Shown here piece by piece: positions 45,701 to 48,700 of a DNA stretch of 64,000 nt. The translations under genes were made by a program, and so were the position numbers. Each line of letters starts with the position of its first letter. The stretch's first letter is position 1. Below the pieces are notes generated by a model. It searched no databases. It worked only from the letters and a program-made list of their open reading frames with translations, and was not told where the DNA came from. The stretch comes from Vicugna vicugna (Eukaryota): NCBI GenBank assembly GCA_013265495.1, contig MU062062.1:1025651-1089650 (forward strand). The letters are read 5' to 3'.

Positions 45701-48700
45701 TTACTGAGAAGCCAGAGGCCGCAGGCCCGAGCCGGCCCGGCCCGGCCGGGGGTGCAGGGAGCGCGGGGGCTCTGACTTGGGGTGAGACGCGGGAACCGGA
45801 AACCTGATGCCCGCGCCTGGCTGACCAGCCGCCGCCGGCCCTGCGGCCGCCCTTCCGCTCGCCGCCGCCCTCTGGTGGCCGACAGGGGCGGCTCCCAGAA
45901 AGTCTGGGGCTCCTGCGGCCGAGGGAAATCGGCAAGTTACGGTCCCAGCGCTGCTCACAGGCGCCGCCCCGCGGAGGAGCGAGGGGGACACCTGCATCCG
46001 CGCCACGTGGTGGAACTCCAGGGGCTCAGGGCCGGTCCACCGAGCCTCCAGCCGCCCGGGCAGGAAGGGCGTTCCTCCCGCGGCCGGGCCGCTCTCTGCT
46101 GGACTCCGACTCCGCACGCACCGCCCCCCCGGCCAGATGCCCGGCCCCCGACCCGCTTCCGTCCTGGTCCCCACAACCGACCACGCGTCCGCCCAGTCGC
46201 CCAGTCGCCCGGCAGCTGCCTCATCAGGCTGGGGAGGGCCTCAGGCCCCGCCCGACCAGGTGCTGCAGGAACCAGGAGCACAAACAGAACATCTACTTAT
46301 TAGTCAGTGAAGGCAGGATGCCCCCAGAGGGAGGAGCCGAGAAAACTCCTGTCCTGGGAAGTGTGACCTAGACTCCAGCCAGTGCGCACGCGCCCTGGGG
46401 GACCGGATGGGGCTCCCCGCCAATTCCTCTGAGCGGGTTCAACCTGACCGGCCCTCTCCTAGGGGCAAAGAAAACCAACCACCGAAGCGAAGGCAGAAGC
46501 GGGTGGGGCAGGTCCTGTTACCTCCACGATCACATTCAGGCCAGTGTCACAGCCCACGCTCAGGTCTGTGCCTGGGATGTTGTTATCAGTGGTGGCAGGG
46601 ACAACACAAATGGGGACGCGAAACTCGGGGTGGCTGCCCCGCGTGTCTGCCATCACCAGCGAACCCTGGAAAGCCTGCAGCGGGGTCAGCGGGGTGGGTG
46701 AGGGGTCAGGGGCGCCAGCTCCCTGCAGTCATCAGGGGACAGGGGACCTGCATCCACGGGGGTCTCTGGGGAGGAAGCTGTGGGGGCACAGGGGGCAGGA
46801 AGAGAGACCAGCAGTGGGGGTCAGAGATGCAGGAGAGGAGATCCAGGAGTAGGGGGGCAGGAGGAGAGACCCAGGAGTGGGGGGAGGGCATGCAGGCCCC
46901 AGGGAGGGCTCCGTGCCCAGAGCACAGGGGGACGCAGTGGGGGGCAGCAGAGCAGGGCAAGAGGTGGCCTTGGGTTAGTGAGGGAAGACAGCCCGGCCCT
47001 TCTAGGCATCTGGGAGGAAGCAAGGGAGCCTCTCCGGCAAGTTCAAGGCCAGGCCCACCTGCTGGCACCCAGCCAGGAGTGGCGCTGCTGCCAGTGGGGC
47101 CCCCCAGGCAGAGCCGGGGGAGTCCTCTCGGCCGTGTGAGGAGCACCCCGTGGGGGCCTCACAGGGAGCAGCTTGGGGGCCTGCGTCCCGAGGCTGGGGG
47201 CCCAGGTGAAATCAGCAGGCGCTGATGTCAGAGGAGTGGGCTGCTTTTGTCCCCAAGCACAAGGCGGAGGTCTGGACTCCTGCCTCAGAGCATTAGTCCA
47301 AGTAGCTCGTTAGTGGCCCAGTCCACCCACCACGGCCCAAAGCCACAAGTCCAAGCACAGCCCGGGCCCCTGCCCGGTCTCTGTGCCCCGCGCAGCACAA
47401 CCCGGGGGCCCCTTCTGTGGGAACGTCCGCAGGCAGGATGGGACCCAGGCCTCTGGGTCTCTGCCCTCCACCCCCGCCAATCCCCAGGGTTCCAAACAGG
47501 CCGGGTTCGGGGGTGGGGGAGCTGCGCCCGAGGACACGTGGACGGTGGACCCGACGCGGGTTAGTCGGGGAGTGGCCGGGAGGAAGGTGAGGGCGTCGCA
47601 CACCTGCCCCACGCCCCCTCCATCGCCCCTCCACCCGCCAGGCCCGGTCCCCACAGGGACCCTCCTCCGGCCCGGTGCAGCTCAGGATCACTGGAGGGCA
47701 CGGTTTGAACCGCTCCCCACCACCACCCAGGACGCTCTGGACCAGGGACCGGGCATCGCGGGCGGGCAGGGTGTCATCGGCGCCTTTCAATCTGACGGTG
47801 GTTCTATGCCCTCAAGTCCTCGCACCCTCTGTTCCCATCACTCCTCCTCCTTCTCCATCTCTCAGAAGACGAGAGGACGCTGCAGAGAGGGGAGAGCCCG
47901 GCCCAGGACGAGACCTGAAATTCTGGGGACCAAGTCCAGTCCTGGGGGGGCAACACTGCACCACCAACACTAAGAAAAGACACTTGACAGTCACAGGGAA
48001 GCCATCCAGGTGCCCACCTCCTTACCAGGTAATTCAGGGCCACCCTCCCCGCCTGGGGCCCGCGCACACGGCGGCCGCGGCTCCCAGCACAACAAGCGGA
48101 TGGTTCTGAGGGGTAACACGCAGCTGAGGACCCCCAAACCCCTGCTCTGAGGTGTCCCCTTGGCCCTGGAGACCCACCACCCTGCGATGCAATCAGTGCT
48201 CAGGACGCGTCCAGACGCAAAGGAAACAGGCTGACGAGGACGGCGGTTGAACGTCCAGAGGACGTGGCAGCTGATGACACAGGGCCATCTCGGGCCCCAG
48301 CCTTGGCACAGGGACGTTCTGGCCGTGGGCTCCCTGTGGGCCTCCTGACATCATGGGGCGTCACCAGCATCCCGGCCCCCGCTCACCAGACGCTGGGGCA
48401 CCCCTGGCCCAGATGTGACCACCGAGATGTCGCCTGGCGGCAAGATCACTGCCAGGACCACCCCCTTCTGGGAACAGAAGGAACCAGCTGGGACAGGAGA
48501 CGCCGGGGACTGACCTCAGCACTCCCAGGGCCAAGAGGTGGCCCTGCCACAAGCCACTGGAGCCTCGTGTGGCCCTTCAGGCCTTCCCTGGCCACCCCCT
48601 TCTCCTGCACGTGGCCAGCCTGGCCCAGTCCCAGCCCAGATCCAGAGCCCCGAAGAGACTGGGCGTCACTGTGACTATAACACACGGGGCTCGGGGCAAA

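Follow-up and report, generated by a model that had tools for sequence, protein, structure and literature searches.

PFKP is an enzyme of the committed step of glycolysis. An intronic exon of human PFKP was predicted by Hatje et al. (2017; PMC5740500, Dataset EV10). In that study more than 10 human reads join both exons, and the pair was left unvalidated as mutually exclusive. These joining reads indicate that the exon predicted in 2017 is spliced into human RNA, though joined to exon 16a. Lam et al. (2021; PMC7954323; also a 2018 preprint) described a mutually exclusive exon event in PFKP between Ensembl transcripts PFKP-203 and PFKP-205, with a Val to Ile change at residue 539 (V539I) beside the fructose-bisphosphate effector site. 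PFKP was also counted among the human tandem-duplicated exon substitution events by Martinez-Gomez et al. (2022; PMC9741552). A comparable exon pair is PKM exons 9/10 (PKM1/PKM2). As in PFKP, the PKM exons are tandem and homologous, belong to an allosteric glycolytic enzyme, and swap a segment that touches a fructose-bisphosphate site. What sets the PFKP pair apart is that joining 16a to 16b preserves the frame, and proteins with both exons are widely annotated.

We analysed a 64,000-nt stretch of Vicugna vicugna DNA (contig MU062062.1), referred to below as the window. It contains a second copy of PFKP exon 16, exon 16b, which is a genuine ancient duplicate already annotated in human and many vertebrates. 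The exon itself is known; what is new is how widely it is annotated, how often both exons are included together, and how derived the vicugna copy is.

Exon 16b in the vicugna PFKP gene

The features of the locus are listed in Table 1. An earlier note on this DNA had proposed a hidden duplicate of exon 16 in the intron downstream of exon 16a, and its description was borne out in every structural detail. The block has no stop codon, encodes 51 amino acids, is flanked by ...gctgcag on its 5' side and by gtaaca on its 3' side, and has the same length, phase and AG/GT ends as exon 16a. Exons 15 and 17 lie where they had been placed, with 16b between 16a and 17. The two copies align without gaps, with 25/51 amino acids and 93/153 nucleotides identical. 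Identity at codon positions 1, 2 and 3 is 34, 37 and 22 of 51, respectively, the third position having diverged most; for the two vicugna copies dS is saturated (1.29).

Table 1. Features of the PFKP exon 16 region, in positions of the 64,000-nt window
Feature	Position	Strand	Remarks
Exon 15	50942..51029	-	terminal ...GGFE; donor side gtacgt
Exon 16a, constitutive copy	50244..50396	-	human residues about 511-561 (see text for the numbering)
Exon 16b acceptor AG (ctgcag), CTGAC branch-point-like motifs upstream	46675..46676	-	CAG kept in all orthologues
Exon 16b, 153-nt, phase 0-0 tandem duplicate of exon 16a	46522..46674	-	51 aa, regulatory (C-terminal) half
Exon 16b codon 19, Arg	46618..46620	-	Cys in 161/170 other 16b copies
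Exon 16b codons 29-30, Thr-Asp	46585..46590	-	Ile in 168/170 and Ser in 166/170 other 16b copies
Exon 16b donor GTAACA	46516..46521	-	+5 base (46517) is C; GTAAG or GTGAG in 8/8 other species
Exon 17	43862..44026	-	ccag, then ACG TGC (TCDRIKQ...)

When the 51 residues of 16b were compared with the PDB by phmmer, human PFKP was matched with E = 4.5e-14, so the similarity is far above chance. Exons 16a and 16b both match PFKP residues 511-561, as adjacent homologous exons of a single gene. Exon 16a falls on chain positions 539-589 of the 812-residue construct 4xyj, which are native residues 511-561 if the 28 extra residues of that construct are an N-terminal tag.

Residue 539 of the human protein corresponds to column 29 of exon 16, which is Ile in nearly every 16b-type copy recovered and Val in 16a. 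Because the published change falls on this column, with Ile in 16b and Val in 16a, the vicugna block is the same exon as the published human one. The human exon, known here from its published description, shares with that of vicugna the gene, the exon and the 51-residue length, and its V539I change agrees with the ATISNN motif of nearly all 16b-type copies. The vicugna copy is distinguished by TTDNNI in place of TISNNV, Arg in place of Cys at column 19, and the GTAACA donor. As to novelty, the point does not hold for 16b, which had been predicted (Hatje et al., 2017), annotated (PFKP-205) and discussed in print (Lam et al., 2021; Martinez-Gomez et al., 2022).

Orthologous copies and selection on exon 16b

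Orthologues of 16b were found in genomic contigs of eight other species. With the window, this makes nine genomic copies, all 153 nt long with AG...GT ends; stops, indels or a lost AG or GT, any of which would have spoken against the exon, occur in none of the nine. One contig (L001) carries exon 15, 16a (96% amino acid identity to vicugna 16a) and 16b in order, with 16b 4.9 kb downstream. In L002/L003 and L011, 16b is followed by exon 17 (98-100% amino acid identity to vicugna exon 17), and all four exons (15, 16a, 16b and 17) are present in L008, which comes from a GC-poor genome. In cross-species alignments of the intron, exon 16b and 10-30 nt around it form an island of alignability, with nothing alignable beyond. 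The mammal-type copies are 57-67% identical to vicugna 16b.

An exhaustive protein search with the 51 vicugna residues returned many short Logan open reading frames of the form ...LQ|51 aa|VR.... This form marks them as genomic read-throughs of an exon with a CAG acceptor and a GTAAG donor. The same search gave no near-identical protein and no cluster representative above 70% identity to vicugna 16b. A homologous-protein search with the same 51 residues gave zero candidates, and a search of metagenome contigs for related loci gave zero relatives. Altogether 170 distinct 16b-type peptides were recovered.

Selection was estimated by the Nei-Gojobori method. Between pairs of species, dN/dS of 16b is 0.08-0.73 (0.23-0.69 in pairs with vicugna), as against 0.00-0.02 for exon 17 and 0.02-0.11 for 16a in the same pairs (0.02 for 16a of vicugna and L001). 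Exon 16b is constrained, but far less than the neighbouring exons. The earlier view that 16b is an old tandem copy kept by purifying selection is thus upheld by dN/dS values below 1 and intact copies. The strength of selection that it implied is not, as constraint is far weaker than on 16a and 17 and the vicugna copy has signs of relaxed or altered constraint. Mammalian 16b evolves fast, whereas the exon is highly conserved in non-mammalian vertebrates, in which it reads AFESLLQLYEAR...NAIVE.

Several other observations were made on these sequences. About 850-970 nt upstream of 16b, at 47522-47645 (- strand), a patch of about 120 nt is 73-76% identical to the introns of L005 and L011 in an otherwise unalignable intron; it may represent a conserved element that regulates splicing, or else an old repeat. 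Three more intronic patches, at 45031-45231, 45388-45538 and 45629-45679 (- strand), lie between 16b and exon 17 and are 71-84% identical to L002. Exon 18 is followed shortly downstream by 68 consecutive N (42612-42679). One 16b copy (P0153; L001:7937-8089) has Asp for the conserved Gly of S-I-G-S-D-T. Its near-identical cluster representative, P0004, retains Gly, and the difference is a polymorphism or an assembly error. The L008 contig (NCBI GCA_050626445.1, VSKV01004189.1) belongs to a Chinese sturgeon assembly and its PFKP model is labelled UNVERIFIED_CONTAM. That model omits exons 15 and 16a and takes 16b, and both species and model are doubtful.

Derived state of the vicugna copy

Three residues of vicugna 16b depart from positions that are nearly invariant among the 170 distinct 16b-type sequences. 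At column 29 (I29T) Thr occurs in none of the 170, at column 30 (S30D) Asp occurs in 2, and at column 19 (C19R) Arg occurs in 4. The serine of column 30 lies in the fructose-2,6-bisphosphate activator site. It is also the reported PFK1 O-GlcNAc site Ser529 (PFKP Ser540), two residues past Thr527. At the donor, the +5 G is lost in vicugna only, all eight other species having G. The base changes unique to the vicugna lineage comprise 6 nonsynonymous and 1 synonymous, a crude count of seven changes that is not significant. Among the other lineages, pN/pS of unique changes is 0.23-0.41 in 5/7 and about 1.0 in L002; L009 has zero unique changes. The vicugna exon is an outlier, the most derived copy among those compared, and its changes fit either recent relaxed constraint or lineage-specific re-tuning.

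These data bear on whether 16b is still an exon in this lineage. It may have become a recently inactivated pseudo-exon that is unspliced in vicugna, with a frame that is open merely for lack of time. Such a reading would explain the donor change confined to vicugna, the three substitutions at positions 95-99% conserved across the 170 sequences, the 6 nonsynonymous to 1 synonymous lineage-unique changes, and the lack of any protein fragment with the vicugna 16b peptide in the protein collection. However, the 153 nt are free of stops and indels, and AG and GT are intact. The G at -1 and A at +3 and +4 of the donor are still able to pair with U1, and every pairwise dN/dS with vicugna stays below 1. 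Words of the exon also occur in RNA-labelled runs of a close relative. The close-relative RNA-type runs contain 55% of the sampled 16b words, as expected for about 2% divergence. Other RNA-type runs of the same relative contain about 20% of a mostly intronic 6-kb stretch, so the presence of 16b words is uninformative on splicing. On balance we consider inactivation a real but doubtful possibility.

Re-tuning of the exon, in which Asp for the activator-site/O-GlcNAc serine and the adjacent Ile to Thr change would be functional and low-level use would come from the weak donor, seems improbable to us. If it did occur, it would give a PFKP isoform with a permanently altered fructose-bisphosphate activator site that could not be O-GlcNAcylated.

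The reading that we favor is that vicugna 16b is, with high probability, orthologous to an ancient alternative exon of PFKP and is weakly constrained. Its use here is probably low and possibly being lost, as suggested by the weakened donor and the three changes at near-invariant residues.

Usage of exons 16a and 16b in other vertebrates

The region of 16b from seabream PFKP was scored alone against full-length proteins and gave 1766 matches. The best 120 of these are named PFKP isoforms of teleosts, sturgeon, bowfin, a frog, turtles, alligator, gecko and snakes. Among these best 120 of 1766, 116 read GGFE|16a|16b|TCDRIKQ and one has 16b partly repeated; the remaining three also run into a 16b-type exon and were missed by the motif. 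Because cluster representatives may favor the longest isoform, the members of ten clusters were read, restricted to those of at least 600 aa. By motif, these 102 members comprised 73 with 16a and 16b, 20 with 16b and 9 with 16a. Eight of the 29 single-type rows proved to be double forms missed by the motif, with the second exon at the flank, and 15 16b-only and 6 16a-only proteins remained as clear single forms.

The non-mammalian RefSeq isoforms (for example Eublepharis macularius X1/X2/X3, Solea solea X1-X3 and Alligator mississippiensis X1/X3) have the order 15-16a-16b-17 and the same junctions as vicugna, GGFE|...|TCDRIKQ. Annotated isoforms that contain either 16a alone or 16b alone and do not differ in length were seen in gecko, sole, trumpetfish and Poeciliidae, for example X1/X2 of leopard gecko (778 aa) and X2/X3 of common sole (792 aa). 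In American alligator and several salmonids, the isoform annotated as X1 is a 16b-only protein. The splice form 15-16b-17, which had been put forward for vicugna from its sequence, is therefore annotated elsewhere, as gecko X2, sole X3, alligator X1, trout X1 and human PFKP-205. In UniParc, one mammalian-type fragment (P0144) runs from 16b through exon 17 into exon 18. We also noted one Sparus aurata protein of 826 aa (P0263; UniProt A0A671Z1G9) that has intron read-through upstream of 16b (…YYGHHHQ|AFES…) and no GGFE of exon 15. It is a mis-built annotation, yet the junction of 16b with exon 17 is visible in it.

The pair could still be strictly mutually exclusive in the manner of PKM exons 9/10, which is what the earlier note had supposed. 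This would agree with the equal length and phase of the tandem exons, with the equal-length single forms above, and with the treatment of the pair as mutually exclusive by Lam et al. (2021; PMC7954323). However, 153 is divisible by three, so double inclusion is not removed by a frame-shift, and nonsense-mediated decay would be unable to enforce a choice. The human joining reads of Hatje et al. (2017; PMC5740500), with the pair marked as not validated, count against it as well. So does the annotation, in which 16a plus 16b is the commonest form recovered (116 of the best 120 of 1766 full-length matches; 73/102 cluster members). Strict exclusivity thus appears unlikely, and 16a/16b is better described as an alternative homologous exon pair, unlike a strict PKM-style switch. 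The pair has the attributes of tandem-duplicated exon substitution, namely homology, shared length, phase and splice sites, cross-species conservation, and substitution isoforms, the last by annotation elsewhere. It departs from the strict type, in which 16a and 16b would never be joined.

GC-rich introns do yield long spurious open reading frames nearby, but a chance frame or a never-functional decaying duplicate is refuted, its likelihood being negligible, by the phmmer match to PFKP, by the frame, length and splice sites conserved in nine species with intact genomic copies, and by the annotated spliced isoforms that contain 16b across vertebrates.

Age of the duplication

Isoforms with 16b are annotated in RefSeq/UniProt for both teleosts and tetrapods, including fish, a frog, geckos, turtles and alligators. 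The 16a/16b duplication is older than the teleost-tetrapod split and dates back at least to the bony vertebrates. In a tree of the 51 columns, 16a is placed beside the exon of PFKM, whereas 16b stays among forms that look ancestral. Because an AU test does not reject a single PFKP-specific origin (p = 0.31), a date earlier than bony vertebrates is not supported.

Implications for PFKP regulation

We propose that an ancestral tandem duplication of PFKP exon 16, of at least bony-vertebrate age, gave rise to 16b. The exon encodes 51 residues of the regulatory half, among them the T-[V/I]-S-N-N loop at the fructose-bisphosphate activator site. Elsewhere among vertebrates, 16b is spliced either instead of 16a or after it, with the frame kept both ways. 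This yields PFKP isoforms in which the allosteric-site segment is swapped or duplicated, and the function of 16b may be to alter sensitivity to the activator or to O-GlcNAc. In mammals, the exon evolves fast under weak purifying selection. In the vicugna lineage it has stayed open and correctly bounded, with its donor weakened and three near-invariant residues changed.

Swapping or duplicating the loop with the activator-site serine by means of an alternative exon is a plausible route to changed PFKP regulation, an idea already published for human. To this our analysis adds that the exon pair is annotated throughout bony vertebrates, from teleosts to tetrapods, and that double inclusion is annotated at least as commonly as substitution. 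It also adds that the mammalian copies are fast-evolving, the vicugna copy being the most derived seen.
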